From Macrostomum lignano (lineage: Eukaryota): DNA of 64,000 nucleotides. The translations under genes and the position numbers were made by a program. The stretch covers positions 18,181-82,180 of the forward strand of contig NIVC01000818.1 of NCBI GenBank assembly GCA_002269645.1. The letters are read 5' to 3'. Below are positions 18,287 through 61,514 of the stretch, piece by piece; the stretch's first letter is position 1; each line of letters opens with the position of its first letter. The notes beneath the pieces are model-generated. The model worked only from the letters and a program-made list of their open reading frames with translations, did no database searches and was not told where the DNA came from.

Positions 18287-19043
18287 ATGCAGCGCTCCGT
18301 GCACCTGACTGCCCTCCTATCCGTGCCTCTGGCCCTGCTGTTCCTGGTGGCGATGAGTCAGCCAAGTGTGCTGCATCACGGATACATCGGCTGCTTTGTT
18401 GATGGTGACAACAGCAACAGAGATTTGAAAGGCCTGGCTGGGTTGAAGACCATCGGGCCTTTCACCGATAAGATAGAGTTCGCCTACTTTTTCAATGGAT
18501 ACACCGTCACCATCGAGAGCTGCAGCAGCCTCTGCGCCCTGGGCAGATTTCGCTACTTCGGTCTGCAGGCGCAAGGCTTCTGCTTCTGCGGCAACAGCTA
18601 CGGACTGCACGGAGCCGCTTCATCAGATTCTGAGTGTAACGAAGACTGCACTGGAAACAGCAGCCAGAAGTGCGGCGGTCAAAGTAGAAACTCCATTTAT
18701 GAGAACATCTATGCGCCCGGTAAGAACATTTTCGGGTCTTTTGGCTAACAATTCCTGCATCAACATTTTTCTGCATTTGTGCTGCTGCTCAGAGACCGGC
18801 CTCTTCAAGCGCGTGGCCTCAACCAAGTCGATGCTCACCACCGCGCCCGGACAGCCAGAGAACAGCACCTACTGGAGCCAGGAGGCCACGGGAGTCTTCG
18901 AGTGCGCCGCCGCCTGCCACCGCAGCCCGGACTGCCTCGCCTGCGCCTTCGTGCAGTCCAGCCGGATGTGCCGCCTCATGAGATTCGCCGCTGTGCCCAG
19001 CGAGGTCGCCAGCGAGGCCCAGTGGGTCTGGATGAAGCCGTGA
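18287..19043 (+). CDS. Secreted WSC-PAN/Apple protein A1; exons 18287-18719, 18793-19043 (227 aa)
   Basis: Hydrophobic signal peptide; WSC signature YIGCFVD...SCSSLC..GRFRYFGLQ...CFCG...C...C.G.....CGG..RNSIY with 8 Cys; phase-1 gtaag..cag intron; exon 2 has PAN core CAAACHRSPDCLACAF...C. Confidence 0.9.
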
Positions 19044-19656
19044 GCCTGACGGTCAATAAAGCAAGCGGAAACAGGAAGTACGAGCCAAGTGATATTCAAC
19101 CTGATATTCGGAACCAAGCTTAACTTCTTGAAACAGCTGACGTACCGTAGGGGATCAGCAATCTGAGTAAAACAAATGAAAATAGTTCACCAATCCAACT
19201 CAACCTGGTTTGCACGACGCACTTTTACGCCGCATCCTGCGCGCTAAAAGCGAGCAAATAAATTCCCCCACGCGACTGCGACCCATGCAATTACTGAATT
19301 GGGAGGCTTTTATGAAATCTTCAATGGATTTAATGGCGCCGGAAACTTCTTAAGCCTTTAATGCCGCATTGAAGGGATTAAAAGCTTCTTGGTCAAGAAA
19401 ATTACTTTCGATTTACATGTAGAAGCACTTTTAAACTAAAACTAAAGAGCTTTATTCACAGTTTTTGTGAATCATTTTCAAATAAAGGTACGATATATTT
19501 CATTTAAAACATGTACATGTATGTATCGATTTTCCAGGAATATATTGATTCTTCCTAAAAAAAGTATCTTTTACCTTGGGCTTTAGCACCAGGCGCCAGC
19601 ACCAGGGGCGCCAGCCCCATTTGCGTCAGAACCAAGAGGCGCCAGCAATAGGGGTA

Positions 19657-20226
19657 CCAGCACCAGAGGCGCCAGCACCAGAGGCGCCAGCACCAGAGGC
19701 GCCAGCACCAGAGGCGCCAGCACCAGAGGCGCCAGCACCAGAGGCGCCAGCACCAGAGGCGCCAGCACCAGAGGCGCCAGCACCAGAGGCGCCAGCACCA
19801 GAGGCGCCAGCACCAGAGGCGCCAGCACCAGAGGCGCCAGCACCAGAGGCGCCAGCACCAGAGGCGCCAGCACCAGAGGCGCCAGCACCAGAGGCGCCAG
19901 CACCAGAGGCGCCAGCACCAGAGGCGCCAGCACCAGAGGCGCCAGCACCAGAGGCGCCAGCACCAGAGGCGCCAGCACCAGAGGCGCCAGCACCAGAGGC
20001 GCCAGCACCAGAGGCGCCAGCACCAGAGGCGCCAGCACCAGAGGCGCCAGCACCAGAGGCGCCAGCACCAGAGGCGCCAGCACCAGAGGCGCCAGCACCA
20101 GAGGCGCCAGCACCAGAGGCGCCAGCACCAGAGGCGCCAGCACCAGAGGCGCCAGCACCAGAGGCGCCAGCACCAGAGGCGCAGCACCAGAGGCGCCAGC
20201 ACCAGAGGCGCCAGCACCAGAGGCGT
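19657..20226. repeat. 15-bp minisatellite (gcaccagaggcgcca)n, about 38 nearly perfect copies
   Basis: Directly visible; degenerate precursor units at about 19585-19650. Confidence 0.97.
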
Positions 20227-21039
20227 CAGTTCAATTGTTTAAATTTTTTAATGAACAAATTGAGTTGTTGAGTTGAACAAATTTTTAATGAAGCAACTCA
20301 ATTAATCCATTTTGACTTTCAGCAACTAGAACGTTGAAAAAACTGATAAATGGCCATAACTTTTAGGGTTTTAAATTATAACTTCAAAAGCGCCAGAGGT
20401 CGACCTTGCGAATTCCGTGAATCTTGTGAAACAGCCTCCAACAGAGGACGTACAATCGAGTTGAATGTTTTTTGCAACTAAAACCAAATTCTAATGAAAT
20501 GGAAACGGTTTGAGTTGTTCCTGTGTTTTTACACTATTACGACATTGTTTGTCACTTTGAAATGATACTGGATGAATAGACCCCAATCGCATGATTTCAG
20601 TCCAGAATATGGTTTCTAAACTTTATGACTTGCAGTCAACCCCCCTCACTAGGGATTTTTTAAAACACAAAAACTCCCAACCCCCACTTTTACCCGACCT
20701 AAGAGTTGGGGAGGATCGAATGAAGAGAGTCAAAGGATGCTGCCAGAGCCACTGCTACCCAGAACGGATCAATGATGCGGTGGGCATTTTTTCACGATTT
20801 TAAACTTCCTAGCTTCAGCGGCTCAGGAATTACAAAGCAACTTCCTTGCCTCGGCTACCATTGTTCTCTCCTGAAAGCGCTGCTTTGAATAGCGACGGCT
20901 GCCTCTACGTGCTCTGAACTTTTTACCATTGTCCGAAACTCTTTCACTGAATTCACCCGAACCCCAACCGGACGGACTCGAAATGGGGGGAAGGACATGG
21001 CGCTGCATGTCAAAGCGACATCGGACCCGCAGCCACGCA

Positions 21040-21288
21040 CCCGCAGCCGACAGCTCAGCCGCAGCTATTGCGCGGCGCATCTGAAGGCTGCGTACGGCTG
21101 TTCAGTCCAAGGACTGGCGGGTCGCCACACACACCCTCAATTACCCCAGCTAATGCTGGCACCCATTTTACAGCTGAGTGAACTGAAGCAATGCAGAGAG
21201 TTAAGTATCCGCTCAAGGAAAAATTGCCAAGAATCGAACCCCCGACCTTTAGGTCGCGAGTCCGACGCTCTAACCACTAGGCTACAAC
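21040..21288 (-). mobile_element. tRNA-derived SINE family 2 with CORE-like central domain
   Basis: Head tgtagcctagtggttagagcgtcggactcgcg...ggttcgattc (A and B boxes), then ccttgagcggatacttaactctctg...ctcagctgtaaaatggg resembling the MIR/CORE consensus; tail shared with 44921-45085. Confidence 0.7.
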
Positions 21289-22103: not shown

Positions 22104-22412
22104 AATAATTTTTTTATTGCCCCCCTTTAAGTGGAGCGGAGTGAGTTTTCTTATCAGTTGGCTCTGGCGCAATCAATTAAAATTGGCAGTGAAGTTTCTG
22201 GCTGATAAAATTTGCATTGAAAAAGGCCATTTAAAACAGTTTTTCGAATATTTAATCCCTTTAGTATTGAAGCAGATACAAGAAATTTTAACTGTCTTCT
22301 TTCCAGACAATTTTGAATCTTTTGGCGAAAACGCGATCAAAATCGGTGAAGAATTGCAATCTGTAGAGCGTTATGGACATACAAATATTAGAGATTTAGT
22401 ATATTTAGAAGA
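22104..22412 (-). mobile_element. Short Helitron-like unit abutting copy 2
   Basis: Minus-strand TC start at 22412 with an AT-rich tcttctaaatatactaaa end like the larger element; related hairpin (gctccacttaaaggggggc) near 22120-22138; CTAG not preserved. Confidence 0.45.
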
Positions 22413-25400
22413 CTAGCAATCAGCGCCCCCCGTTGGGGAGCCAAAAAAATGCAGTACAAGTTTTTTTTAATAAACTACATGTAAGCGTCTCTTTGCATTA
22501 TACCTTGTAAGCCTTGACATGTCAGAAAATCCCCCCACAAGCCTTAGCATATCAACCCCCTTGACGTCTTAGCAATGCCCCATAAGCCTTGCAATCTTAA
22601 AAAATCTGTCAACCTTCTAACCCTAGCCCTAGCCTAACCCTAGCCCTAACCCTAACCCTAACCCTAACCCTAACCCTAAAGCATTGACATTTCAGTAATT
22701 CTCTCTAACAGTCATTATAGCACTACTACAGCATTAAAGCGATTCCTTGCAAGCCTCGACATCGTAGGGATTCCCAAATGAATCTCTTAACTTCGACATG
22801 AAGCTTCTTTTATTTTTTACATTACGCTTTTTCTATCAGCGATCCCTCCCGTGAGGAGCCAACAAATAAAGAAAAAAAGTTTTCAATGGACTACATGTAG
22901 CTTCTGACTTTAGCCTTGAAATCTCATTTATTCCCCATGAGCCTTGACATCTCAGCTATTCCCCCGTAAGCCTTGACATGTCAGCAATGCCCCCATAAAC
23001 CTTGATATCTGAAAAATCCCCTGTTAACCTTGAAACCCGATAAAATATAACCCTCAACCCACACCTGACCTAAACCTAACTTTAACCCAACCTAAAGCCT
23101 TGAAATCTCAGCAATTCTTCTCCCCTAAGCCTTGAAATTTTAGTGATTCTTTCTTCAAGAAACACAGCACTATAGCGATTCCCTCCAAGCCTTGACATCG
23201 TAGCAATTCCCAAATGAATCTTTTAACTTCGACATGACTCTTCTTTTATGTATACATAGTGCTTCTTTTCTTTTTTACATGACTCTTCTTCTATCAGCGC
23301 CCCCCCCCGTGGCGAGCCAACAAAGAATGTAATAAAAAAATTGAGTAAAGTACATGTACTTTGAAGTAGCTTCTGACTTTTGCTTTGACATCTCAGAAAC
23401 CCCCCCCCCCCCGCGTAATCTCAGTTATTCTCCGTGAGCCTTGACATCTAGCACAGTAAGTCTCCCCAGCGCAGCACAATAGCTTCATTTAATTTTTACA
23501 TGACACCTCTTTCATGTCTGACATTTTTTTGTCACTTGATTTTTGATGTCAGTATGATTTTTTTACATGACGCTTCTATGATTTTTTACATGACGCTTCT
23601 ATGATTTTTTACATGAAGCTTCTATGATTTTTTATATGACGCTTCTATGATTGCTTACGTGACGCTTCTATGATTTTTTACATGGCGCTTCTATGATTTT
23701 TACATGACGCTTCTATGATTGTTTACATGACGCTTCTATGATTTTTTACATGACGCTTCTATGATTTTTTACATGAAGCTTCTATGATTTTTTATATGAC
23801 GCTTCTATGATTGCTTACGTGACGCTTCTATGATTTTTTACATGACGCTTCTATGATTGTTTACATGACGCTTCTATGATTTTTTACATGACGCTTCTAT
23901 GATTTTTTACATGACGCTTCTATGATTTTTTACATGAAGCTTCTATGATTTTTTATATGACGCTTCTATGATTGCTTACGTGACGCTTCTATGATTTTTT
24001 ACATGGCGCTTCTATGATTTTTACATGACGCTTCTATGATTGTTTACATGACGCTTCTATGATTGTTTACATGACGCTTCTATGATGTTTTACATGACGC
24101 TTCTATGATATTTTACATGACGCTTCTATGATTTTTTCATGACGCTTTCATGATTTTTTACATTACGCTTCTATGATATTTTACATGACGCTTCTATGAT
24201 TTTTTACATGACGCTTCTATAATTTTGCATGACGCTTCTATGATTTCTTTATGACGCTTTCATGATTGTTTACATGACGCTTCTATGAATTTTTTACATG
24301 ACGCTTCTATGATTTTTTACATGACGCTTCTATGATTTTTTACATGACGCTTCTATGATTTTTTACATGGCGCTTCTATGATTTTTTACATGACGCTTTC
24401 AAGATTGTTTACATGACGCTTCTATGATATTTTACATGACGCTTCTATGATTGTTTACATGACGCTTCTATGATTTTTTACATGACGCTTCTATGATTTT
24501 TTATATGACGCTTCTTTGATTTTTTACATGACGCTTCTATGATTTTTTCATGACGCTTTCATGATTTTTTCATGACGCTTCTATGATTGTTTATATGACG
24601 CTTTCATGATTGTTTACATGACGCTTCTATGATTGTTTACATGACGCTTCTATGATTTTTTACATGACGCTTCTTTGATTTTTACATGACGCTTCTATGA
24701 TTTTTTACATGACGCTTCTATGATTGTTTACATGACGCTTCTATGATTTTTTACATGACGCTTCTATGATTGTTTACATGACGCTTCTATGATTTTTTAC
24801 ATGACGCTTCTATGATTTTTTACATGACGCTTCTATGATTGTTTACATGACGCTTCTATGATTTTTTACATGACGCTTCTATGATTGTTTACATGACGCT
24901 TCTATGATTTTTTACATGACGCTTCTATGATTTTTTACATGACGCTTCCATGATTTTTTACATGACGCTTCTATGATTTTTTCATGACGCTTCTATGATT
25001 TTTTCATGACGCTTCTATGATTTTTTCATGACGCTTTCATGATTGTTTACATGACGCTTCTATGATTTTTACATGACGCTTCTATGATTTTTTACATGAC
25101 GCTTCTATGCTTTTTTACCTGACGCCTTTTGTCCTTTATTTGTCCTTTAATAAAAGGTTTTAATAAAAAACTTTTCACTACTTAGATTCGAACCCAGGTC
25201 GCTGCATTTGCAGTCCAGTCTGTTCACTTCTAGGCTAGCTATTATCGAATTTATAAATTAAATTGTAGCACTTATATAATTCAACACTCACTCACGAATC
25301 AGTTATGACATAATCAATTTCCCAGGCAAGTCAGTATCAGTCTCAATTAAAGTTGAGAATATGGTTACGCAATCTAAATCAAGTCTGGTGCTACGCTTCC

Positions 25401-25732
25401 ACACTGCATTTTCAATACTGTGACGCAATTCAAGTCGGAGTTACAATTCAGTTATGATGCAATCTATTTCAGAATCAGAATTCAACCAGTCAATTTTTTT
25501 CTCTAGCATTATTACAATGCATTTCAAGTCGAAAAGTTTGCTTGACCTTTGCAAAAAAGCATGTTTTTCGAGTATTTAATGCCTTTAGCATCGAGCAATT
25601 TCTTAGCCAAGACACATGTACCGTCACGGGAAAATTTCTGATCGAACAGTGCAAGTCTCATGAAAATCGGTTAAGCCATTTTTTCTCTAATCGATTGCAA
25701 GCAAGCAAGATTTTCATTTTTAGTATATAGGA
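22413..25732 (-). mobile_element. Non-autonomous Helitron-like element, copy 2
   Basis: CTAG at 22413-22416 with hairpin gctccccaacggggggc; TC start at 25732; collinear with 4632-8279 including the CCCTAA tract, three hairpin-headed modules, minisatellite and tRNA-like piece. Confidence 0.75.
23553..25126. repeat. About 21-23-bp minisatellite (catgacgcttctatgatttttta)n internal to Helitron-like copy 2
   Basis: Directly visible. Confidence 0.97.
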
Positions 25733-27062: not shown

Positions 27063-27064
27063 AT

Positions 27065-29640: not shown

Positions 29641-30412
29641 ATGTTCCGCCCCGATCAGGCCCTCCTGCTGCTGCTGGTGCAGGGCTATTGTTGCTCAGGG
29701 CTTCTGCTGCCTCCGCAGCCGCTGGGCCATCAGTACCTTGGCTGCTACGTTGACGGAGGCAACGGGGACCGGGACCTGGTCGGCCTGAAAGGGGTCACTA
29801 CTTTGGGGCCCTACTCATATGACTCAGGAAACCCAGTCTTTGTCCGAGAAGAAAGTCTGACGCTGGAGATGTGCAGAGAAATCTGCTCCTACGGCCGCTT
29901 TCGCTACTTCGGTACCCAGAGCCGCGTTTTCTGCTGCTGCAGCTCGACCTACGGCTCGAAAGGCGTCGCCGCTGCCGCCGACTGCATCTACCCTTGCACA
30001 GGGAACACGTCTCAGGAGTGCGGCGGCGACTCAAGAAACTCCATCTATGAGTCTCTGTATCCACCGAGTGTGTTCTGCGCCAAGAACATTGTGATCCTCT
30101 CAATAAGTTAAACCAGTTTTTATCACAACGATTTAGACAACGTTTTAAACTCCTTCCTAATTTACAGTTGAACCGAAACTAATGAAAGTTCCCGTTGCTT
30201 CCATGCCGAGCATCGCAGCCTCCACCAGCTCCATCGTTTACCGCAGCGAGACGGCCGGAAGCGTCATCGAGTGTGCGGCCGCCTGCCACCGAAGCCCGGA
30301 CTGCCTCGCCTGCGCCTTCGTGCAGTCCAGCCGGATGTGCCGCCTCATGAGATTCGCCGCTGTGCCCAGCGACATCGCCAGCGAGGCCCAGTGGGTCTGG
30401 GTGAAGCCGTGA
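29641..30412 (+). CDS. Secreted WSC-PAN protein B1; exons 29641-30067, 30168-30412 (223 aa)
   Basis: Signal peptide; YLGCYVD...MCREICSYGRFRYFG...CGGDSRNSIY; phase-1 intron at the homologous position (weak donor gtgtgt, acceptor tttacag); PAN exon; tataaaaa about 85 bp upstream. Confidence 0.87.
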
Positions 30413-31294: not shown

Positions 31295-31829
31295 CCTGAG
31301 GATGTAGATGCTAATTACCTGAGGATCTGGATGCTAATTACCTGAGGATCTGGATGCTAATTACCTGAGGATCTAGATGCTAATTACCTGAGGATGTAGA
31401 TGCTAATTACCTGAGGATCTGGATGCTAATTACGTGAGGATGTAGATGCTAATTACCTGAGGATCTAGATGCTAATTACCTGAGGATCTAGATGCTAATT
31501 ACCTGAGGATCTAAATGCTGATTACCTGAGTATCCAGATGCTGATTACCTGAGGATCTAGATGCTAATTACCTGGGAATCTAGATGCTAATTATCTTAGG
31601 ATCTAGATGCTGAATACCTGAGGATCCAGATGCTAATTACCTGAGGATCTGGATGCTAATTACCTGAGGATCTGGATGCTTATTACCTGAGGATCTAGAT
31701 GCTTATTACCTGAGGATCTAGATGCTAATTACCTGAGGATCTGGATGCTAATTACCTGAGGATCTGGATGCTAATTACCTGAGGATCTGGATGCTTATTA
31801 CCTGAGGATCTAGATGCTAATTACCTGAG
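31295..31829. repeat. 23-bp minisatellite (cctgaggatctggatgctaatta)n, about 23 copies
   Basis: Directly visible. Confidence 0.96.
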
Positions 31830-32935: not shown

Positions 32936-33803
32936 ATGCATGCGGCTGCTTTCTCGCTGCTGCTGTTGCTCGTCAGCGGTGGCGGCTGCACCGTCGCAGT
33001 TCCTCCACAGCCGCTGGGGTTCAGCCACGTTGGCTGCTATGCGAATGGCGGCGGCGGCAACAAAGACTTGGCCGGACTTCTCGGACTCGTCTCGCTTGGA
33101 ATGTTTGCCAACCATGAGAACGTCCCTGCATTCGTGCGCACTGACAGCTCGATGACCCTGGAGCTGTGCAGCCAGATCTGCTCCTACGGCCGGTTTCGCT
33201 ACTTCTGCGTTCAGGGCAGGCACTTCTGTGGCTGCGACAACACGTTTGGCTCCCACGGTGCCGCTGCTCCGTCGGACTGCAGCGTGTCCTGCGGAGGAAA
33301 TGCGAGTCAGATTTGCGGTGGCTGGGGCTACAGCTCCATCTACGAAATCTCCTATGCTCCCGGTACGACGGTTGCTTTGAATAAGAAGAAACTATTTGCT
33401 AATAGTTATTTAACTTTAACGGATTGAATACAAGTACTATCTAACTTGCTATTGTGTTCGATGAAGATGTAACTTCTCATGCATTCAGATTAAAAGCTTA
33501 GCATTGGTCACCAGAATGCATGACAGCAGAAAGTCACTCAGCAACTTCTTTCACTCAACTTCACCCGCAGTCGGGTCCGTGTTGGAGCGAGTGGCCGCGT
33601 CTGCCATGCCGACCATCTCAGCCTCCGCCAGCTCCGTCATCTACTGGAGCCAGGAGGCCACGGTGGCCTTCGAGTGCCTCGCCGCCTGCCACCGCAGCCC
33701 GGACTGCCTCGCCTGCGCCTTCGTGCAGTCCAGCCGGATGTGCCGCCTCATGAAATTCGCCGCAGTGCCCAGCGAGGTCGCCAGCGAGGCCCAGTGGGTC
33801 TGA
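32936..33803 (+). CDS. Secreted WSC-PAN protein B2; exons 32936-33362, 33571-33803 (219 aa), last 4 residues lost to a TGG>TGA change
   Basis: Signal peptide; HVGCYAN...LCSQICSYGRFRYF...CGG; phase-1 gtacga..ccgcag intron; PAN exon; ancestral stop persists 12 nt downstream. Confidence 0.85.
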
Positions 33804-34455
33804 GTGAAGCCGTGAGCCTGTCGGCTGATAATCTGCCGTGGAGAAACAAACAGCTCTGAACCCAAAGCTCATTTTGTCTGCTTAAGGAAATGTTTGAACA
33901 ATTGGTTGAAGCAGCAGGTGGCCACAAAATATTGGCAGATTGAATTTGCAGTGCTGCCACAATACCAAGATCACAACACAACAGACGATAAGTGAATTAT
34001 GGCATCGCAAAACTCGAAGCAAAACTCGGCTGCCTACTGTTAATTATTTCTTCATATATCCGTTACAGACATGGAGTTACACTAGGCAGTTAGCTGTACA
34101 TATTGATCCAACTGATCTCAAATCCAAGTATCCAACAGGAAATGCACCGATCAGGGAAATGAGAGTTTTATTAGCAGAATCAGCGACTTGATCATGCAGC
34201 CTCTGGACTCAAAGCCCAACGTTATAGAAAACGCTGCTTGTTTCACAAATTCCGTTAATTTTTTGGGGACAGTTTACTGTAAATGCTTCTTTATGAAACC
34301 CTTGTCTAAGTTAATGAGTTATCAACCTGACATTGGCGCATTAAATCTTAAGAAATCGACTACACTACTATTTAGTAGCGAGATATGAATAGCAAATACA
34401 CTGTTGAAAATGCATCGAAAATTTAAAGCCAACTGTGCTTCTGCTCCTGCCTCCT

Positions 34456-34726
34456 GGCTCGGCTTCTGTTGCTATGGCTTCGGCTTCTGTTGCTATGGCT
34501 TCGACTTCTGTTGCTATGGTTTCGGCTTCTGTTGCTATGGCTTCGACTTCTGTTGCTATGGCTTCGGCTTCTGTTGCTATGGCTTCGGCTTCTGTTGCTA
34601 TGGCTTCGGCTTCTGTTGCTATGGCTTCGGCTTCTGTTGCTATGGCTTCGGCTTCTGTTGCTATGGCTTCGGCTTCTGTTGCTATGGCTTCGGCTTCTGT
34701 TGCTATGGCTTCGGCTTCTGTTGCTA
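34456..34726. repeat. 21-bp minisatellite (ggcttcggcttctgttgctat)n, about 13 copies
   Basis: Directly visible; single monomer in the paralogue at 41181-41201. Confidence 0.96.
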
Positions 34727-36516: not shown

Positions 36517-37267
36517 ATGCAGCGCTCCGTGCACCTGACTGCCCTCCTATCCGTGCCTCTGGCTCTGCTGTTCCTGGTGGCGATGAGTCAGCCAAGTGTG
36601 CTGCATCACGGATACATCGGCTGCTTTGTTGACAGCAACAGCAATAGAGATTTGAAAGGCCTGACTGGGTTGAAGACAATTGGGCCTTTCACCGATAAGA
36701 TAAACTTGGCCTACTTTTACAATAAATACACCGTCACCATCGAGAGCTGCAGCAGCCTCTGCGCCCTGGGCAGATTTCGCTACTTCGGTCTGCAGGCGGG
36801 AGGCTTCTGCTTCTGCGGCAACAGCTACGGACTGCATGGAGCCGCTTCATCAGATTCTGAGTGTAACAAAAACTGCTATGGAAATAGCAGCCAGATTTGC
36901 GGCGGCTTCGGTAGAAACTCGGTGAGAACTTCTATGCGCCCGGTAAGAAAAGTTTGCTGTTCCTTTAGCTAAAAATTCCTGCATCTACATTTTTCTGCAT
37001 TTGTGCTGCTGCTCGGAGACCGGCCTCTTCAAGCGCGTGGCCTCAACCAAGTCGATGCTCACCACCGCGCCCGGACAGCCAGAGAACAGCACCTACTGGA
37101 GCCAGGAGGCCACGGTGGCCTTCGAGTGCCTCGCCGCCTGCCGCCACAGCCCGGACTGCCTCGCCTGCGCCTTCATGCAGTCCAGCCGGATGTGCCGCCT
37201 CCTGAGATTCGCCGCTGTGCCCGGCGAGATCGCCAGCGAGGCCCAGTGGGTCTGGGTGAAGCCGTGA
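36517..37267 (+). CDS. Secreted WSC-PAN protein A2; exons 36517-36942 (or 36921), 37019-37267; frameshift apparently compensated by an acceptor shift
   Basis: High identity to A1/A3/A4. Net 4-nt loss near 36921 makes the old donor phase 0; the ancestral acceptor AG is mutated to GG and the next AG (37017-37018) gives a phase-0 exon start. Could alternatively be a pseudogene. Confidence 0.65.
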
Positions 37268-43765: not shown

Positions 43766-44519
43766 ATGCAGCACTCCGTGCACCTGATTGTCCTCCTATC
43801 CGTGCCTCTGGCTCTGCTGTTCCTGGTGGCGATGAGTCAGCCAAGTGTGCTGCATCACGGATACATCGGCTGCTTTGTTGACAGCAGCAGCAATAGAGAT
43901 TTGAAAGGCCTGACTGGGTTGAAGACTATTGGACCTTTCACCGATAAGATAGAGTTCGCCTACTTTTTCAATGGATACACCGTCACCATCGAGAGCTGCA
44001 GCAGCCTCTGCGCCCTGGGCAGATTTCGCTACTTCGGTCTGCAGGCGGAAGCCTTCTGCTTCTGCGACAACAGTTACGGACTGCACGGAGCCGCTTCATC
44101 AGATTCTGAGTGTAACAAAGACTGCGTTGGAAACAGCAGCCAGATTTGCGGCGGCTTCGATAGGAGCTCCATTTATGAGAACTTCTATGCGCCCGGTAAG
44201 AAAAGTTTCCTGGTCATTTAGCTGACGATTCCTGCATCTGCATTTTCTCAATTTGTGCTGCTGCTCAGAGACCGGCCTCTTCAAGCGCGTGGCCTCAACC
44301 AAGTCGATGCTCACCACCGCGGCCGGACAGACAGAGAACAGCACCTACTGGAGCCAGGAGGCCACGGTGACCTTCGAGTGCCTCGCCGCCTGCCACCGCA
44401 GCCCGGACTGCCTCGCCTGCGCCTTCGTGCAGTCCAGCCGGATGTGCCGGCTCCTGAGATTCGCCGCTGTGCCCAGCGAGGTCGCCAGCGAGGCCCAGTG
44501 GGTCTGGGTGAAGCCGTGA
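43766..44519 (+). CDS. Secreted WSC-PAN protein A3; exons 43766-44195, 44269-44519 (226 aa)
   Basis: Intact signal peptide, 8-Cys WSC domain, phase-1 intron and PAN exon. Confidence 0.9.
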
Positions 44520-45307: not shown

Positions 45308-47250
45308 TGCATGCCTGGGTGAGCTCGAACTTGAGTCTGTCAGCTGACATGCATGCCTGGGTGAACTCAAACTTGAGTCTGTCAGCTGACATGCATGCCT
45401 GGGTGAGCTCGAACTTGAGTCTGTCAGCTGACATGCATGCCTGGGTGAGCTCGAACTTGAGTCTGTCAGCTGACATGCATGCCTGGGTGAGCTCGAACTT
45501 GAGTCTGTCAGCTGACATGCATGCCTGGGTGAGCTCGAACTTGAGTCTGTCAGCTGACATGCATGCCTGGGTGAGCTCAAACTTGAGTCTGTCAGCTGAC
45601 ATGCTTGCCTGCGTGAGCTCGAACTTGAGTCTGTCAGCTGACATGCATGCCTGGGTGAGCTCGAACTTGAGTCTGTCAGCTGACATGCTTGCCTGCGTGA
45701 GCTCGAACTTGAGTCTGTCAGCTGACATGCATGCCTGGGTGAGCTCGAACTTGAGTCTGTCAGCTGACATGCATGCCTGGGTGAGCTCGAACTTGAGTCT
45801 GTCAGCTGACATGCATGCCTGGGTGAGCTCAAACTTGAGTCTGTCAGCTGACATGCTTGCCTGCGTGAGCTCGAACTTGAGTCTGTCAGCTGACATGCAT
45901 GCCTGGGTGAGCTCGAACTTGAGTCTGTCAGCTGACATGCATGCCTGGGTGAGCTCGAACTTGAGTCTGTCAGCTGACATGCTTGCCTGCGTGAGCTCGA
46001 ACTTGAGTCTGTCAGCTGACATGCATGCCTGGGTGAGCTCGAACTTGAGTCTGTCAGCTGACATGCTTGCCTGCGTGAGCTCGAACTTGAGTCTGTCAGC
46101 TGACATGCATGCCTGGGTGAGCTCGAACTTGAGTCTGTCAGCTGACATGCATGCCTGGGTGAGCTCGAACTTGAGTCTGTCAGCTGACATGCATGCCTGG
46201 GTGAGCTCGAACTTGAGTCTGTCAGCTGACATGCTTGCCTGCGTGAGCTCGAACTTGAGTCTGTCAGCTGACATGCATGCCTGGGTGAGCTCGAACTTGA
46301 GTCTGTCAGCTGACATGCATGCCTGGGTGAGCTCGAACTTGAGTCTGTCAGCTGACATGCATGCCTGGGTGAGCTCGAACTTGAGTCTGTCAGCTGACAT
46401 GCATGCCTGGGTGAGCTCGAACTTGAGTCTGTCAGCTGACATGCATGCCTGGGTGAGCTCGAACTTGAGTCTGTCAGCTGACATGCTTGCCTGCGTGAGC
46501 TCGAACTTGAGTCTGTCAGCTGACATGCATGCCTGGGTGAGCTCGAACTTGAGTCTGTCAGCTGACATGCATGCCTGGGTGAGCTCGAACTTGAGTCTGT
46601 CAGCTGACATGCATGCCTGGGTGAGCTCGAACTTGAGTCTGTCAGCTGACATGCATGCCTGGGTGAGCTCGAACTTGAGTCTGTCAGCTGACATGCATGC
46701 CTGGGTGAGCTCGAACTTGAGTCTGTCAGCTGACATGCATGCCTGGGTGAGCTCGAACTTGAGTCTGTCAGCTGACATGCATGCCTGGGTGAGCTCGAAC
46801 TTGAGTCTGTCAGCTGACATGCATGCCTGGGTGAGCTCGAACTTGAGTCTGTCAGCTGACATGCATGCCTGGGTGAGCTCGAACTTGAGTCTGTCAGCTG
46901 ACATGCATGCCTGGGTGAGCTCGAACTTGAGTCTGTCAGCTGACATGCATGCCTGGGTGAGCTCGAACTTGAGTCTGTCAGCTGACATGCATGCCTGGGT
47001 GAGCTCGAACTTGAGTCTGTCAGCTGACATGCATGCCTGGGTGAGCTCGAACTTGAGTCTGTCAGCTGACATGCATGCCTGGGTGAGCTCGAACTTGAGT
47101 CTGTCAGCTGACATGCATGCCTGGGTGAACTCGAACTTGAGTCTGTCAGCTGACATGCATGCCTGGGTGAACTCGAACTTGAGTCTGTCAGCTGACATGC
47201 ATGCCTGGGTGAGCTCGAACTTGAGTCTGTCAGCTGACATGCATGCCTGG
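45308..47250. repeat. 42-bp minisatellite (gcatgcctgggtgagctcgaacttgagtctgtcagctgacat)n, about 46 copies
   Basis: Directly visible; degenerate monomer at 37849-37886 in the paralogue; source of the two 681-aa ORFs. Confidence 0.97.
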
Positions 47251-49227: not shown

Positions 49228-50192
49228 GCTATTGCACTCGATTGGTGCCTAAGCTGCAGACTATTGCACTCCATTGGTGCCTAAGCTGCAGACTATTGCA
49301 CTCCATTGGTGTCTAAGCTGCAGACTATTGCACTCCATTGGTGCCTAAGCTGCAGACTATTGCACTCCATTGGTGTCTAAGCTGCAGACTATTGCACTCC
49401 ATTGGTGCCTAAGCTGCAGGCTATTGCACTCCATTGGTGTCTAAGCTACAGGCTATTGCACTCCATTGGTGCTTAAGCTGCAGGCTATTGCACTCCATTG
49501 GTGCCTAAGCTGCAGGCTATCGCACTCCATTGGTGCCTAAGCTACAGGCTATTGCACTCCATTGGTGCTTAAGCTGCAGACTATTGCACTCCATTGGTGC
49601 CTAAGCTGCAGGCTATTGCACTCCATTGGTGTCTAAGCTACAGGCTATTGCACTCCATTGGTGCTTAAGCTGCAGGCTATTGCACTCCATTGGTGCCTAA
49701 GCTGCAGGCTATCGCACTCCATTGGTGCCTAATCTACAGGCTATTGCACTCCATTGGTGCCTAAGCTGCAGACTATTGCACTCGATTGGTGTCTAAGCTG
49801 CAGACTATTGCACTCGATTGGTGCCTAAGCTACAGGCTATTGCACTCCATTGGTGTCTAAGCTGCAGGCTATCGCACTCCATTGGTGCCTAAGCTGCACG
49901 CTATTGCACTCGATTGGTGCCTAAGCTGCAGACTATTGCACTCGATTGGTGTCTAAGCTGCAGACTATTGCACTCCATTGGTGCCTAAGCTGCAGGCTAT
50001 TGCACTCCATTGGTGTCTAAGCTGCAGGCTATTGCACTCGATTGGTGCCTAAGCTGCAGGCTATTGCACTCGATTGGTGCCTAAGCTGCAGGCTATCGCA
50101 CTCCATTGGTGCCTAAGCTGCAGGCTATCGCACTCCATTGGTGCCTAAGCTACAGGCTATTGCACTCGATTGGTTCCTAAGCTACAGGCTAT
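49228..50192. repeat. 32-bp minisatellite (ctattgcactccattggtgcctaagctgcaga)n, about 30 copies, ending at the start codon of WSC-PAN C
   Basis: Period 32 (49261 to 49293); the last unit merges into ggctATGcag. Confidence 0.96.
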
Positions 50193-52501
50193 GCAGCTGA
50201 CGTTCCAGAAACTGCTGGCAGCTCTGCTGTCACTTGTCAGCCTGCTGGTGTCGGCCCAGCTGGTAGTCAAGTCCGTCAACTACATCGGCTGCTTCGTTGA
50301 CCTCAACGACAGCTCCAGGGACTTGACGGGCCTGTCGGGCATCACCCGGATTGGCCCCTTCAGCCAGATCAACCCCGCGGGGAGCCACCTGTTCCGCTTT
50401 GACATGACCATCGGCAGGTGCGTCAGGCTGTGCTCGCTCGGCCGGTTCAGGTACCTCGGCCTGCAGGCCACCGGCTTCTGCAGCTGCAGTCGGAGCCACG
50501 GCTCCCACGGGCCGGCCTCCGAGACCGAATGCAACCGGAACTGCACGGGCCATGCCAGACAAATCTGCGGCGGTCTGCTCAGGAATTCGATTTACGAACT
50601 GGCTTATAAAGACGGTGAGCGAGCGATGGACTCTGGATTGTTGAGCACAATTAAAAGCGAATCTTGAACAGCTCATTTCTACCACTAAGGATTAAATTGC
50701 TTGCTCCCAGGGACAGTTGGTTCGGAAGACTCTACAATCATGGGCAGCTGTTTAGATTGAAGCCCCATTGAAACGCACTAAATTTCCTACACTTCAAATT
50801 TGTGCTCAGCGAACAATGCTAGGAATTCCCATTGTGAAACAAACACGTCCTGCGACTTTATAAATCAATGTTAAATCAAGTGTAAACTTCAAACTTCAAA
50901 TAAATAGAGAGTCAAAATAAACAATCAATGTGGATAAAATTGTTTTAGACAATCTAAATGATAATTTGGACATTCAACATGAGACACGCATACAGCGAGC
51001 TGCAGCAGCTTGCTGGCAAACTGGTATTGGCCACGGAGTCCGTGGAGTCCGTGTTTGAGGCGGCATTCTGCTGCTGCTGTGTGTACGGTTTGCTGCTGCT
51101 GCTGGTGCGCGCGATGAGAGAAATTCTCATTTAGAATGGCTTTTTATCGATTAGATTGGCCACAGACTCTGTCCACGGAGCGAGCTGCCGCAGCCATAGA
51201 GCAGCCATTGGCCATAGAGTGTTTCTCGTTTTGAATGTCCAAATTATCATCTAGATTGTCAAAAACGATTGTGCACCACCCAGGAACTCCTCATATGGGC
51301 ATCGAATAGAGCAACACTCGTGCCATGCGCGTGTTAAGAAACTTTCAATTGACCTGGACCCAGGTGCCTTCCACATCTGGTGACTTTGGTTCAGACCAGA
51401 CTAATGTCACATCAAAGCCACGTCAGCCATATCTTCTCTTGGGCTCAGATCATAGACTAGACTCAAAAAGAACTCTTAGAATTGTTTGCTGAGCCAAGGA
51501 TCCGCCCTCGGCCTGATAAAAACGCATCCTCGGACTTTCTTTTCCATAGAACGATTAATTATCACGTGTGATCTATACTTCTAAACCGACAATATCTACC
51601 TCTAGTTGAAACATGGTTGATTCAAATCATGGGTTTCAACCATAGACAGTCTCCGCGGACCGCGAAATTACCACAAAAAGACTGCTGAAATAACAGTCAT
51701 TGTCTTTTCATTCTGCCAGCGGGCCCCAATTTTGCAGTCGGGCATCTGTGGCGTTTTCAGCTCACATTTTTAGTAGCCGTCTTTCCCCAATATAACTGTC
51801 GGTTGCTTCCTTTCACTCAAAGTAGATTGTTCTAGTCTGCCGTTCTCCAAGTTGGGTGTAGAAATCCAAGCCATGATAGACTCGAAGCAGCTGCGATTTG
51901 CATTTGTTGATCTGTCTCACAATGCATTCCATCGGAGCTTAAATTTTTAACTCTTCTTCTTCTTCTTCTCTTCTCTTGTTTCTCTTATTTACAGTCTCGA
52001 AACTTTGTCTATGGTCTGAATGTACGCCCCGACAGACGCTCAGCCCCACAGCCCAGCTAGCAGCGGTACAAATCTATGGTAAATATATGGAACCTCCTAT
52101 TTCCGTCCGCACAGAGGGGTAACACGGGCATGAACAATAAGTTCTTCAAGTAAACTACTGTATTTCTTAGGATGCATATTGCTGGGAATTACTTGCAGTT
52201 TTAGGGTATCCTGGATTGTCGTCAACAATAAAACAAAGCCTCTGGTATTTCAGCAACTGGCGGCTTCAAGACGCTGCCAGCAGCATCGCAGCCTCTGGTG
52301 TCTGACCCAGGATTCAGTGCCAGCACTCACTGGAGTCTGCCCGCCGCCGTGTCGCTCGAGTGCCTTGCCGCCTGCCACCGCAGCCCCAACTGCCTCGCCT
52401 GCGCTTTCGTGCAGTCCAGCCGGATGTGCCGGCTCCTGAGATTCGCCGCTGTTCCCAGCGAGGTCGCCAGCGAGGCCCAGTGGGTCTGGATGAAGCTGTG
52501 A
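50191..52501 (+). CDS. Secreted WSC-PAN protein C; exons 50191-50614, 52254-52501 (223 aa)
   Basis: Signal peptide MQLTFQKLLAALLSLVSLLVSA; YIGCFVD...CGGLLRNSIY; donor G|gtgagc, acceptor tatttcag, phase 1; PAN exon. Confidence 0.87.
50942..51266. mobile_element. MITE-like element with about 35-45-bp terminal inverted repeats in the intron of gene C
   Basis: ttttagacaatctaaatgataatttggacattcaa (about 50943) is the inverse of ttgaatgtccaaattatcatctagattgtcaaaaa (about 51231-51265); target-site duplication not resolved. Confidence 0.75.
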
Positions 52502-53264
52502 TCCTTGACTGAGCCGTCACTTAACAAAAATTCCCAAATTACATCATGCTCTGCGACAAAAATAAACCTGGGCCAGTGCCCTGCTGGGAAAAATTGTCAC
52601 GGTTAGCGCATGTACGTGTGGCTACTACGAGTAGCAGAGAAGCGTAAAACTTCGATTTTTTGCACCAAACGAGTTATAAAATTGGAATCGGTTCGAAAAT
52701 CTTTTATCGAAACAAAAAACTACAGTAAATCCACTCAAGCACGGGAGCTCAGTGTCTCAGTTTTTATGTTCCCATAAAATTAAAGCTCTCATCGGATTAG
52801 CTACGGAGGAAGGCACAATGCGTCTCTTCTATTTTACAGTTGCTATTAGCAACTGAAAATCTGCATAAAAAAACAAAAAATGCAGGCGCTCCTGCCAGTC
52901 TCGTACGATGGTAACAATGGCAAGCCATGCATCCGTGGCTCTTTTTATTGAGTAGCAGTGAAACATTGATCGTGCAGTCTTCAATGCGGGAAAAATCTGC
53001 TGTCGAAAAAGCTGCAGAAACATTCAATCGGAGTGCGAATCGATATCCGGTGCGCTAAACGGCTTAAGTCATTATTGCTGAGCACGTCTGACACAATGAG
53101 GCCGCCATCAATGGTGGAACCGGAGACCGGAAAGGCTGCAGTTTCAGCCTATTGCGGTTGTGGATTCCCTCAGACTCTCAGGGGTTCGGTTGACTATATA
53201 AGTAACTCAAGACAGCCCTCAGCTCGAAGCAGCTCGCCCACTGGCCCCGGGCCCAGGCTCCAGG

Positions 53265-54357
53265 ATGTTGCATCCCTTGCTGCTCCTAGTACTAGCAGCC
53301 CTGAGCACAATGGCGAATGCTCAAGCAACAATTAGCCACTCAAACTACATCGGTTGCTATGTGGACGGGGACGACACCAGCCGAGACTTGACCGGCATGG
53401 CGCCGTTTTCCACCTTCGCGTCCACGAGCGTCGGGTCCGGCATTCTGTACAGGCCGGACATGACGGTGTCCATGTGCGGCAGGATCTGCGCTCTTGGCAG
53501 ATTTCGCTACTTCGCTCTACAGGCCACCGCCTTTTGCAGCTGCGATTCAACCTACGGCAGCCACGGATCCGCAGCCGAAGCCGACTGCTACCAGGACTGC
53601 GCTGGCAACGCGTCGGAGAAGTGCGGCGGACCCTACAGGAATTCCATCTACGAAAATGTCTACCAGCCTGGTACGAGCCCGCGTCTAGGAGGCTTTAAAG
53701 CCTTCTTTAAAGAAAACTAAAGCCTTAGCTGTTCTTTGTTGCGTAGCCACCTGAGTAGCTGAAGTCCCTCTGGGAAATCTTGAGAGGTCTAACTATGGCT
53801 GAAGAACTAAGTTCCCTGAATATATTCATAACAGAGTCGTGAACAAGGACTACATGTACTAAAGTAGAAGGACGCAACACTCAAAGTTCAGAAGCTCAGT
53901 GTCGTCATGACGTCAGCCGAAGCTTAGGGACGACTGGTCATGTACTCTGGAGGCAGTGCAAGACTGCGAAATACCGGTACGAGTACAGAAGAGACTCTAG
54001 ATGGCACGCGCACGTATCGTATTTGTAGAAAGAGCCTTTTTTATTTAAGACCAGAACGGCATGGTCCTCACTCCCCTACGCCGCATTTCTTCACTTACAG
54101 TCGGTTCAAAGTTCACCAAGGCCGCCTCGAGCTCCAACAGCATCGTGAAAAACGCAGGCCAGTCAATCCTGACCCACTGGAACGACACCTCGCCATCAGC
54201 CAACGGCCAAATTAAATGCGCGGCCACTTGCCAGCGCAACCCAACCTGCCTCGGATACGCCTTCGGGCAGTCCAGCCGCACCTGCTGGCTGACGACCTTC
54301 GCCTTGGCGCCCCCGATCGTCGCTGGCGAGTCGGCCTGGATCTGGATGAGGAACTGA
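53265..54357 (+). CDS. Secreted WSC-PAN protein D (divergent PAN); exons 53265-53670, 54101-54357 (220 aa)
   Basis: Signal peptide; YIGCYVD...MCGRICALGRFRYF...CGGPYRNSIY; phase-1 gtacga..ttacag intron; PAN CAATCQRNPTCLGYAF...C. Confidence 0.88.
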
Positions 54358-57290: not shown

Positions 57291-58016
57291 TATTTAGTAC
57301 TCAACACACGCGCTACATGTACCCTTAGTATGTGAATTGTGCATTGTGCATTGACATGTACTTTATGATGGCAAACACTCCGCACTGCAGTTAGTATGGG
57401 CGTTAAATGAAGCACGTCTATTGAAGAGGTTATTGTTGGTGTTAAAATACAAAAAATCAGGAAGACCGAATATAATGCTAATTAATGCTCTCACAAACTA
57501 CTGAAAGTAAGATTTAAGAACGGACCACGCCTAGAAGGGCTTTGGGTCTCCCTCGCTCGTTTTTCTAAGCAGAAGCCACGGCACGGAAACCATGGGTAGA
57601 GCCGTAATGTCCTTTGTCCACAGCCGGTGCAGAAGGTGCTGCTTCTGACTCTGCGGGCCGACTCCGCAACCGGTTGTCACCAAATTTCTCAATATTACTC
57701 GTATATTTTTCAACGATTTTCAATGCAAGAATATTGAATAATATTTGCTGGGAATCCATCTTGGCGTTGATGATGCAACAGAAAATAACTCTGATCAGAG
57801 AAAGTCACAGCAGAGCAAGCAAAGTTAATCAAAGCTCAAAACTAATCATTTCCAGCATCAAACTCCAGTTTAGAAGTGACTTTATTAACTTTAACAGAGA
57901 ATTAAGAGAAGTAGGCTAAGAAATACAAAGATTTTAATCAAGGAGGGGCTCTCGATTTGTCAGTAATAATGGCTCCGCTGTTACGGACTGCTCAAGTTCA
58001 ACTCATCGCTCACTGA

Positions 58017-58769
58017 TCACAGCTTCACCCAGACCCACTGGGCCTCGCTGGCGACCTCGCTGGGCACAGCGGCGAATCTCATGAGGCGGCACATCCTGCT
58101 GGACCGCACGAAGGCGCAGGCGAGACAGTCCGGGCTGCGGTGGCAGGCGGCCAGGCATTCAAAAGCCACGGTGGCCTCCTGGCTCCAGTAAACCCTCCTG
58201 ACCAGCATTTCGAGCACGGTGATCAGGGCGATTTCGGTTGAAGCCATCGACTTGTAGGACCCATTGGCTGGAAGTTAACGGAGAAATAAAACTTATTTTA
58301 AACAAAAACATTGTCAACAGCCACATCTTAACTCACCTGATGTGTAGATGTTTTCATGCAGACTGATTTTTTTGGTCCCACCGCAGGACTGCGAGTTGTT
58401 TCCGGCGCACTTCTTAACATCGCAGCCTCCACCGTTGCACGGCGGAATACGCTGCACAGTCGACCCGCAGACGCACTCGCTCCCATCGCGCAGACCGAAG
58501 TAACGAAATCTGCCCATGGCGCAGGCGCCACTGCAGAACTCGATGGTCATGTCGTCTCTGTCAAGGACGCCTCTTGCAAGGTCAACATCATAGGCTCCAA
58601 GCATTGCCACACCCGTCAGCCCGTTCAAGTCTCCATGCGAGCTGTTACCGAAAGTGTCCAGGCAGCAGTCCACGTGGTTAATGAATTGCACAATGGGCTG
58701 ACCGAACACCGAGGCAGCTGTCAAGAGTCCAACAGTCGAAGTGAGCGAGATGAAGACCCATGGCAACAT
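58017..58769 (-). CDS. Secreted WSC-PAN protein E (most divergent WSC); exons 58769-58337, 58267-58017 (227 aa)
   Basis: Signal peptide; FCSGACAMGRFRYFGL...CVCG...CAGN.SQSCGG; donor G|gtgagt, acceptor cttccag, phase 1; PAN exon 3' part nearly identical to A types. Confidence 0.85.
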
Positions 58770-58910: not shown

Positions 58911-59803
58911 GATGCAGCTGTGCGTACAAGCCAGGCCCGTATGAGATATTTGCATCATCGAAGGCCAGTCCCAAGTTTCGGCCTTAATGAAATATGGGAG
59001 ACTTTTAAGTGGTGACAGCACCGGTGTGTGAATGCTTTATGAGCTGTCACTCATTTTCTTGCGAGCGTCATCAATATTTGACTTCAATCTCTCACTCTCA
59101 CACAGTCACTGACGTAAAAAATCGTGTGAACGTGCGTGATTTCGGACATTTTATACCGTACTTACAAGTCAGTAAGGTGGTGATTAACGTGCCTCAGTAA
59201 TTCTTTTATTACGAGTACTTTTCAACTTCAGCAAAATAATTTCGTCGCTTCTCTGCTCCAGTTTACATGCAGTTCCCAACGTATCATATTCAACCATCGC
59301 TATGAGCACACAAGCAACTTTGCGAGCAGCGGCTCTTGCAAACTTTTCTTTCTTCTTAACTTTTCTCCTAGAAGCTAGCTTTGATAATTCACTTTGCGAA
59401 GAAAAAGTGAATAAAATTGTCATACCTTGTTGGGGTTACAGCGGGAATTTTCGCAAACTGCCTTCTCACACGGCCATGCTCTCCACGAAGTGATAGTCGT
59501 TGTTCCGACAGAAGTCACGAGATGCTCAGCTTCCTACCAAAAAGCATCATTCACATGCGGAAGCAGAGCGGCGCTGCAACAGGAATTGAAGACTGCCTTC
59601 AGTTTGGATCGATCACAGTTTCTCACGTCTCCACAGCTTTTGTTAAAGCATCAGCTGCAGTGTTCCATTCTCAGTGAGCACTTCGCACCGGGCATGATCC
59701 GGTCTTGGAGCCGCTGCTCCGGAAGACAAGAGTTTGCAGCGGCAGGACGCGCGGCTTCCTCTTGGCTTGGTTTAGCTTAGTACCTGGCATATCAGCAGGC
59801 AGG

Positions 59804-60092
59804 TGCAATATTAGCAATCATGAATGCAATATCAGCAATCATGAATGCAATATCAGCAATCATGAATGCAATATTAGCAATCATGAATGCAATATCAGCA
59901 ATCATGAGTGCAATATCAGCAATCATGAATGCAATATTAGCAATCATGAATGCAATATCAGCAATCATGAATGCAATATCAGCAATCATGAATGCAATAT
60001 CAGCAATCATGAATGCAATATCAGCAATCATGAATGCAATATCAGCAATCATGAGTGCAATATCAGCAATCATGAATTCAATGTCAGCAATC
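59804..60092. repeat. 21-bp minisatellite (atcagcaatcatgaatgcaat)n, about 13-14 copies
   Basis: Directly visible. Confidence 0.95.
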
Positions 60093-60751
60093 GTAAAAAC
60101 TCTTTGTTTCGTAATTCTACTTTTTAGTGCTTCTGTGCTCAAAGCTTCCTAATGGGGTCTCGCTCAAGCAGAAGCTGTGAAACAATTTAGGAAAGAAGCA
60201 CCACATATCTGCTTTCACATGTATAGCTTGTATTAAAATATTGAGGCACTTTCGGTTTGATCTTACGATATGGAGAAGTATCTGATATATGCCTGGGTAA
60301 TTCTCGCATAAAATAAAACGAAATTGCTCTGATTACATCTACTACTGTTTCAGTAGCATAAGTCAGTTTTAGATGCTAAAAATAGGCGGCGAGTTTGATT
60401 TTCATTTTTCACCAATTCTAACTATAAGCTACCTTTTACGAGCTACTAAAATGTTAAGCAGCACAGCATCAGAGTCAGCCAATGCATTTTTTGCCAAAAG
60501 GTCAAACTCGTACTAATCTTGAAATCTCGATCTACATGCATTGTATTTGTTATATAGCTCGCACAGGCATTGAAGCAATGTAATCTATTAACTGGCTCAT
60601 ACCAAAGCAGAGAGGCAATAAATATAGTCTAGAAAATATATTAAATATTGTCAATATTCCATCGGATGTTGCGCCAAAGAGCAGCTACAGGTGTGCAGAG
60701 ACTTCATGCCTAGAGAATCTACCAAAATGATCAGCGACAGACCATCGCAGG

Positions 60752-61514
60752 TTACTCAGTGTACAGCTTCACCCAGACCCACTGGGCCTCGCTGGCGACC
60801 TCGCTGGGCACAGCGGCGAATCTCATGAGGCGGCACATCCGGCTGGACTGCACGAAGGCGCAGGCGAGGCAGTCCGGGCTTCGGTGGCAGGCGGCGAGAC
60901 ACTCGAAGGCCACCGTGGCCTCCTGGCTCCAGTAGGTGCTGTTCTCCGGCTGTCCGGGCGCGGTGGTGAGCATCGACTTGGTTGAGGCCACGCGCTTGAA
61001 GAGGCCGGTCTCTGAGCAGCAGCACAAATGCAGAAAAATGTAGATGCAGGAATTGTTAGCCAAAAGACCCGAAAATGTTCTTACCGGGCGCATAGATGTT
61101 CTCATAAATGGAGTTTCTACTTTGACCGCCGCACTTCTGGCTGCTGTTTCCAGTGCAGTCTTCGTTACACTCAGAATCTGATGGAGCGGCTCCGTGCAGT
61201 CCATAGCTGTTGCCGCAGAAGCAGAAGGCTCGTGCCTGCAGACCGAAGTAGCGAAATCTGCCCAGGGCGCAGAGGCTGCTGCAGCTCTCGATGGTGACGG
61301 TGGCCATATTGAAAAAGTAGGCGAACTCTATCTTATCGGTGAAAGGCCCGATGGTCTTCAGCCCAGTCAGGCCTTTCAAATCTCTATTGCTGTTGCTGTC
61401 AACAAAGCAGCCGATGTATCCGTGATGCAGCACACTTGGCTGACTCATCGCCACCAGGAACAGCAGGGCCAGAGGCACGGATAGGAGGACAATCAGGTGC
61501 ACGGAGCGCTGCAT
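60752..61514 (-). CDS. Secreted WSC-PAN protein A4; exons 61514-61085, 61011-60752 (229 aa)
   Basis: Inverted paralogue of A1-A3; intact splice sites, phase 1; C-terminus WVWVKLYTE. Confidence 0.9.

Follow-up and report, generated by a model that had tools for sequence, protein, structure and literature searches.

The analyzed window is a stretch of 64,000 nucleotides (nt) from contig NIVC01000818.1 of the flatworm Macrostomum lignano. It contains a 43-kb tandem cluster of nine paralogous two-exon genes, which encode products of about 220 amino acids (aa), and the subject of this study is the C-terminal part of these proteins, called the tail in the following, which is highly similar in eight of the nine genes. 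The gene models were derived from reading frames and splice anchoring. In all nine genes exon 1 encodes a signal peptide and a WSC domain, and exon 2 (about 250 nt) encodes one PAN/Apple-like domain. The introns have GT-AG borders, are in phase 1 with the exception of that of gene A2, and are between 69 and 1639 nt long, the longest being the intron of gene C (50615-52253, 1639 nt versus 69-430 nt in the other genes). The nine genes are:

18287-19043, forward strand: gene A1, exons 18287-18719 and 18793-19043; UniProt P0013 and P0004 are near-identical
29641-30412, forward strand: gene B1, exons 29641-30067 and 30168-30412
32936-33815, forward strand: gene B2, exons 32936-33362 and 33571-33803
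36517-37267, forward strand: gene A2, exons 36517-36942 and 37019-37267
43766-44519, forward strand: gene A3, exons 43766-44195 and 44269-44519; identical to UniProt P0016
50191-52501, forward strand: gene C, exons 50191-50614 and 52254-52501
53265-54357, forward strand: gene D, exons 53265-53670 and 54101-54357; same architecture, tail not homogenized
58017-58769, reverse strand: gene E, exons 58769-58337 and 58267-58017; identical to UniProt A0A1I8IH79 (P0006)
60752-61514, reverse strand: gene A4, exons 61514-61085 and 61011-60752; identical to UniProt P0014

The WSC domain (Pfam PF01822) was detected in five of five proteins tested, with scores of 38-52 bits at a cut-off of 27.8 (E = 7e-14 for A1). 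The scores for PAN_1 (PF00024) lay on both sides of the cut-off of 21.4 (21.7 bits for A1, 22.3 and 23.3 bits versus 18.8 and 19.0 bits), and only positions 20-56 of the 76 profile positions were matched. When a family profile of exon 2 was compared with solved structures, all significant matches were to the N domain of HGF and to the apple domains of apicomplexan MIC4/microneme proteins (best E = 0.0012); plasminogen matched more weakly (E = 0.29), and the four lowest rows (E 0.6-1.3) were unrelated proteins. Because the match to PAN/Apple structures covers nearly the whole exon (profile positions 6-70 of 81), exon 2 is predicted to be a single PAN/Apple-like module. A relative, P0182, is labelled an Apple domain protein in UniProt. 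An A-type protein modelled with AlphaFold2 reached a confidence score (predicted local distance difference test, pLDDT) of 52, which is too low for the model to be of use. The WSC fold itself has been described to be related to PAN modules (PMC5014086).

A 76-mer quoted from the tail of A1 is present in seven copies with at most three mismatches, compared to zero copies expected by chance:

18928, forward strand: copy of the 76-mer
30297, forward strand: copy of the 76-mer
33700, forward strand: copy of the 76-mer
37152, forward strand: copy of the 76-mer
44404, forward strand: copy of the 76-mer
58132-58057, reverse strand: copy of the 76-mer
60876-60801, reverse strand: copy of the 76-mer

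An eighth copy, with about six mismatches, is found in gene C at around 52390. For the quantification of similarity, a core of 126 nt was defined (codons EC to W), in addition to a 45-codon core for Nei-Gojobori estimates and a 138-nt core for the site-pair test. The 126-nt core is 90-97% identical among A1-A4, B1, B2, C, and E, compared to 63-68% identity with D and 77-81% identity with the unlinked paralog P0007. A first-pass annotation of the window had claimed that about 140 nt are near-identical in eight genes, which is exact for the A and B copies, whereas the tails of C and E are less exact, with 91-96% identity to the others. Its further statements, that D has the only divergent tail and that the remainder of the genes differs extensively between subfamilies, are in agreement with our results. 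Between subfamilies the nucleotide identity is 44-60% for the WSC exon (87-96% within the A group) and 36-59% for the 5' part of exon 2, and the protein identity is 35-52% for the WSC domain, 15-47% for the 5' part of exon 2, and 87-98% for the tail.

The same contrast is observed at silent sites. Between subfamilies the proportion of synonymous differences (pS, Nei-Gojobori) of the WSC exon is 0.58-0.78, which corresponds to a synonymous divergence (dS) of more than 1.1 or to saturation. For the 45-codon core of the same gene pairs it is 0.03-0.30 (A-B 0.03-0.14, A-C 0.13-0.24, A-E 0.17-0.24, C-E 0.30), compared to 0.38-0.51 for D versus all other genes; the tail values are 0.42-0.54 versus D and 0.43-0.53 versus P0007. 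An equal silent divergence of tail and WSC exon, which had been considered in the first-pass annotation, can thus be dismissed. Codon usage was compared as the fraction of conserved, degenerate residues that are encoded by the same codon, in the tail versus the WSC domain, and P0007 (locus L001, the sole unlinked family member compared as DNA) and the in-cluster gene D served as controls. This fraction is 52-62% in the WSC domain and 73-78% between the unconverted control tails and the cluster genes, and it reaches 92-98% in the tails of A-B and B1-B2 pairs and 81-84% in those of A4-C, A4-E, and C-E. For A1-B1 the codon was identical at 39 of 42 tail residues (0.93) versus 36 of 58 WSC residues (0.62; p = 3e-4), and for A1-B2 at 42 of 43 (0.98) versus 30 of 53 (0.57; p = 1e-6). 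The GC content at third codon positions (GC3) is 0.89-0.96 in the homogenized tails, 0.78-0.83 in P0007 and D, and 0.64-0.86 in the WSC exons, a pattern that is consistent with GC-biased conversion.

Evidence for exchange between the genes

Separate trees of the WSC domain and of the tail, a check already suggested in the first-pass annotation, are incongruent. In the WSC tree the A clade has a support of 100%, B1+B2+P0007 of 94%, and C+D of 86%, whereas all three clades are lost in the tail tree, in which A4 pairs with B1 and A3 with C. The nearest WSC relative of B1 is P0008 (59% aa identity), but the tails of these two are only 67% identical; for B1 and A4 the values are 50% for the WSC domain and 93% for the tail. 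The linker of B1 and B2 carries the motif of P0007/P0008, and WSC domain plus linker group with P0007.

The onset of the homologous block lies within exon 2, at a distance from the stop codon of about 174-187 nt for B2 and E and of about 135-150 nt for B1 and C. The junction with the A sequence is at TACTGG (residues YW) for B2 and E, and the similarity of B1 and C begins at the EC codons. In the seven-codon stretch SQEATVAF, which follows YW, the identity to A4 is 86-100% for B2 and E, versus 48-57% for B1 and C. As the onset of identity moves between genes, it is a poor fit to a fixed constraint boundary. The tail blocks and putative tracts are:

18866-19043, forward strand: copy of the tail block in A1, with BLAST alignments of 150-187 nt to B2, E, B1, and C (91-95% identity) that reach as far as the stop codon
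30263-30412, forward strand: putative conversion tract of B1 with an A-type tail, 95-96% identity to A1, A3, and A4 over 135-150 nt, 5' breakpoint near the EC codons
33638-33852, forward strand: putative conversion tract of B2, from the YW codons via the stop codon to about 40 nt of A2/A3-type 3' untranslated region (UTR), 91-93% identity to A2 and A3 over 219 nt, 96.5% to A4 over 173 nt
58009-58190, reverse strand: putative conversion tract of E, extending between the YW codons and the stop codon, with 174-182 nt that are 93% identical to A3, A4, and B2
52356-52512, forward strand: copy of the A-type tail in C, 91-94% identity to the tails of A, B, and E

The approximately 40 nt of 3' UTR common to B2, A2, and A3 are non-coding. 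Apart from these, the sequences 3' of the stop codon are unrelated even among the A copies (except A2/A3), and the 100 nt downstream of the genes have an identity of 47-55%, which is the level of unrelated sequences. The first-pass annotation had proposed repeated gene conversion or exon replacement. Tree incongruence, breakpoints, UTR transfer, and the mosaic described below argue for the former, whereas exon replacement is not supported, because the breakpoints fall within the PAN domain encoded by exon 2 rather than at the intron, and the genes show no modularity at the level of exons.

The 138-nt core contains nine informative sites, none of which backs the A clade. The four-gamete test is failed by 18 of the 36 site pairs, and the minimum number of recombination events (Rm) is at least 4. 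Among the A copies Rm is at least 6 and exchange extends along the whole gene; the UniProt proteome of M. lignano contains many reshuffled A-type protein variants. Comparison with P0007, the P0008 group, and relatives at a greater distance allowed three sites to be polarized. Of the derived states, LM is present in A1, A4, B1, B2, and E, V243 in A4, A3, A2, B1, and E, and P245 in A1, A2, A3, and B1, a distribution that requires transfers or repeated identical mutations. A GENECONV-like permutation revealed significant concordant tail runs (p<=0.0005-0.01) in 20 of 22 between-subfamily pairs with D excluded; no significant run was found for A2-B1, A2-C, and B1-C. The pairs with D were not significant either, with the exception of a short run of 12 sites in the WSC region of B2-D.

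The last 78 nt of the E tail are identical to the A/B consensus, and E shares the derived LM and V243 with a subset of the A copies. D is located between C and E and yet is only about 65% identical to them in the core, and its homeolog P0064 is intact. B2 has a premature TGA (TGG>TGA, 33801-33803) four codons before the ancestral stop, so that the last four residues are lost. In A4 the stop codon is lost (60752-60763) and three codons (YTE) are added; the same KLYTE ending is found in UniProt P0014 and P0022, and the 3' end of A4 (AAGCTG) is closer to C and E than to A1-A3. A2 (36880-37025) lacks 4 nt close to the end of exon 1, and its acceptor is changed from CAG to CGG. Its frame is restored only by an acceptor AG 2 nt downstream, and the conserved IYENxYAPE motif is then replaced. 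Its core differs from that of A1 by eight nonsynonymous and no synonymous changes. A2 is probably a decaying copy or pseudogene, or else a compensated variant.

Conversion, constraint, and alternative explanations

Taken together, it is probable that short gene conversions acting on a strongly constrained PAN tail have homogenized it in eight of the nine genes. The case for conversion, which would act jointly with purifying selection and codon bias, is strong in B1, B2, E, and the A copies and weak in C. We infer repeated, homology-limited conversion as the mechanism behind the observed anatomy, silent-site contrast, tree incongruence, variable breakpoints, and mosaic of derived states. Within the PAN domain, the C-terminal two thirds form the part of the protein that is under the strongest constraint in the wider family, and this block would have kept a nucleotide similarity sufficient for heteroduplex formation, while the rest of the genes diverged beyond recognition. 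Non-allelic conversion events of about 135-215 bp could then repeatedly copy the block among A, B, E, and probably C, and conversion would also shuffle sequence among the A copies. The outcome would be one A-type tail on paralogs that are otherwise saturated. The tract ends would be the ends of homology, i.e., mostly the stop codon on one side and variable points inside exon 2 on the other. As conversion requires homology, the tracts would be confined to the island that constraint has preserved, and D would escape because it is too diverged. Because the tracts appear to be limited by homology and the A copies exchange over their full length, ordinary conversion seems to be sufficient, and no dedicated mechanism for a constant region is indicated. 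The process is of a well-known kind, namely, partial concerted evolution, in a family that has not been described previously; a literature search retrieved nothing relevant on gene conversion in WSC+PAN genes or on a WSC+PAN family of flatworms.

Several observations weigh against this interpretation or restrict it. The codon identity of the C and E tails is not clearly above that of the control tails, and therefore the synonymous evidence alone is not decisive for these two genes; on silent sites alone, the case for conversion is strong for B1 and B2 and not clear for C and E. The high GC3 lowers the level at which pS saturates. Even the unlinked P0007 has an unusually high similarity to the cluster genes in the 3' half of the tail (pS 0.28-0.42, proportion of nonsynonymous differences about 0.1), and constraint therefore explains a part of the pattern. 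The motif SSRMCRL..FAAVP.EVASE..W.WMKL is conserved across the whole family, and protein constraint and the very high GC3 add to the identity of the tails. Gene C retains the ancestral state at three of three diagnostic codons, and the only variant that it has in common with A3 alone is a synonymous CGG, so that conversion into C is no more than plausible. Lastly, the evidence stems from one genome sequence of M. lignano.

It could be argued that the A-type 3' end was gained only once each by B1, B2, C, and E, in chimeric events at duplication (unequal crossing-over or fragment replacement), and was thereafter maintained by purifying selection. In fact, the trees strictly require only two to four transfers, every recipient has a single clean 5' breakpoint, and the tail pS of C-A and E-A, about 0.17-0.30, suggests that these exchanges are old. 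However, one-off chimeras fit poorly because the downstream flanks were not transferred together with the tails, except for the short UTR segment in B2, and because the mosaic is too fine, both within the 138-nt core and among the A copies, including the many reshuffled variants in the proteome. Therefore, we regard this scenario as unlikely.

Selection without any transfer, i.e., amino acid constraint in combination with extreme codon bias, or a nucleotide element in the 3' part of the coding sequence, would be in accordance with the GC3 of the tails, with the small distance between the control tails and C/E in codon identity, and with the family-wide motif. But B1 and B2, although sisters of P0007 in WSC domain and linker, have all A-type diagnostic residues, and their tail pS is 0.03-0.15 to A versus 0.43 to P0007. 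The gene-specific onset of high identity, the shared non-coding UTR, and the mosaic distribution of derived states are likewise difficult to reconcile with selection alone, and this explanation is judged to be quite improbable. An RNA element in the tail was rejected, as there is no Rfam match and the folding energy of the tail is no better than that of shuffled sequences (z-scores 0.17-0.81). Unlike the tail, a stretch of the WSC exon of A1 (18400-18543) folds better than shuffled sequences (z = -3.0). An open reading frame (ORF) in an alternative frame, which covers the tail in several copies, was treated as a by-product of GC richness; in UniProt it is read by a single model (P0005), which stems from a copy with a frameshift.

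An artefact of assembly or polishing, in which cross-mapped reads of paralogs imposed one consensus on all copies, might come to mind in a hidden polyploid such as M. lignano, whose genome is rich in repeats and contains many near-identical copies, but it is very unlikely, because every copy has private substitutions inside the block and unique flanks; in addition, cross-mapping is unable to create similarity out of saturated divergence, and the UniProt proteome holds the proteins identical to E, A3, and A4 as well as a second E-like copy (P0019) with the same tail.

Wider family, possible function, and neighborhood

An exhaustive search revealed many more WSC+PAN proteins of about 210 aa, and each one that was looked up is from M. 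lignano, which points to a large lineage-specific expansion. A second B-like subfamily (P0008-P0011, P0020, P0021, P0181, P0182), which is encoded elsewhere in the genome, has protein identities of 79-87% in the WSC domain and 85-98% in the tail, and the tail of P0181 is partly A-like (CAAACQRSPDCQAC). Tail exchange may be general in the WSC-PAN expansion. As tail and head have different histories, analyses of whole genes mislead, and this bears on trees, ortholog calls, and selection estimates in the expansion. The cluster, with its resolved breakpoints, would exemplify how an island of homology is maintained by purifying selection on a single domain and allows conversion to link paralogs that are otherwise unrecognizable.

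Judged from their domains, the proteins look like secreted lectin-like molecules, and our best guess is that they are putative two-module (WSC and PAN) glycan- or protein-binding proteins. The homogenization of the tail might itself be selected: all members could dock via the PAN core on one shared partner (e.g., a receptor or a component of the matrix), which might be located in the mating partner or on a microbe; conversion would spread co-adapted tail variants, and the WSC domain and the N-terminal part of PAN would diversify in ligand specificity. This idea is speculative and we consider it rather doubtful. If true, the cluster would encode a germline lectin repertoire with a "common handle" and "many heads." Should the family prove to be reproductive or immune, the uniform docking end versus the diverse heads would be a testable functional hypothesis.

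Almost all genes of the cluster are separated by minisatellite arrays, in which a unit of 9-48 nt (15-48 nt for those listed below) is present in up to 83 copies:

1-1447: minisatellite array
2123-3363: minisatellite array
5764-7669: minisatellite array
19591-20229: minisatellite array
23553-25125: minisatellite array
31295-31829: minisatellite array
34455-34726: minisatellite array
41399-41824: minisatellite array
45308-47250: minisatellite array
49228-50192: minisatellite array
59804-60092: minisatellite array
62972-63772: minisatellite array

A 23-nt array and its flanks are present twice (4631-8279 and 22412-25732). A 32-nt tandem array (49228-50195) reaches the ATG of gene C and leaves no room for an ordinary promoter or 5' UTR. 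The arrays may promote recombination in the cluster. The upstream neighbors are:

10424-10957: ORF with ankyrin repeats
12432-13190 and 13569-14129: split protein kinase gene
15236-16627: unannotated gene

The UniProt model P0017 fuses a homeolog of the gene at 15236-16627 with an A-type gene and a downstream APAPE repeat. Three overlapping ORFs between A2 and A3 (39464-40689), which look retroelement-like by eye, had no Pfam match at E<=0.001.

Comparison with known systems

Many prostate-limited seminal-fluid candidates of M. lignano are WSC proteins, e.g., Mlig-pro46 (PMC5977470 Table S1; PMC6953679). They resemble the cluster proteins in being small secreted WSC proteins of the same species that are encoded at multi-copy loci, and the PAN tail is not described in the two publications. 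For the 18 published seminal-fluid primer pairs, no match was found in the window or in L001. The link to seminal fluid is only a lead.

The first-pass annotation had compared the cluster with immune receptors composed of variable and constant parts. The likeness to the antigen receptors of vertebrates is only a loose picture, variable domains joined to a uniform one, and the analogy is not supported: each M. lignano gene encodes its own copy of the tail, rearrangement signals and a conserved upstream anchor are absent, and the dN/dS (ratio of nonsynonymous to synonymous divergence) of the WSC domain is about 0.5-0.8 within the A group, which is fast but gives no evidence of diversifying selection (between subfamilies dS is saturated). 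A further system with variable and conserved parts are the VSG cassettes of trypanosomes, in which the conserved 3' end provides the downstream homology for the conversion of the variable N-terminal domain. Common to both are a conserved C-terminal/3' block attached to very diverse N-terminal domains and the clustering of the genes. In contrast to the VSG genes, the M. lignano genes have no expression site and no conserved upstream anchor (the 150 nt upstream are 47-54% identical between subfamilies, and there were no upstream BLAST hits); only the 3' block is common, so that homology on both sides was not found, and it is the conserved block itself that would move, and not the variable part.

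In the abalone protein VERL, some repeats are homogenized by concerted evolution, while the terminal repeats diverge quickly. VERL is also a secreted binding protein, as is predicted for the M. lignano family, possibly likewise related to reproduction, with a homogenized part and a fast-diverging part. However, the repeats of VERL are located within one gene, in contrast to the separate genes of M. lignano, in which the dN/dS of the WSC domain is below 1.

Interlocus gene conversion that is limited to a segment of tandemly arranged family members is well known for the human gamma-globins, the red/green opsins, and the 3' exons of MHC class I genes. The M. lignano cluster shares with these systems tracts of about 0.1-0.2 kb, mosaic variants, tract ends at the loss of homology, and an elevated GC3, and in all of them a constrained part is homogenized while another part diverges. 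In contrast to them, the M. lignano block links subfamilies that are saturated at silent sites in the remainder of their coding sequences, and it comprises only two thirds of a single domain, with ends that do not coincide with those of the exons.

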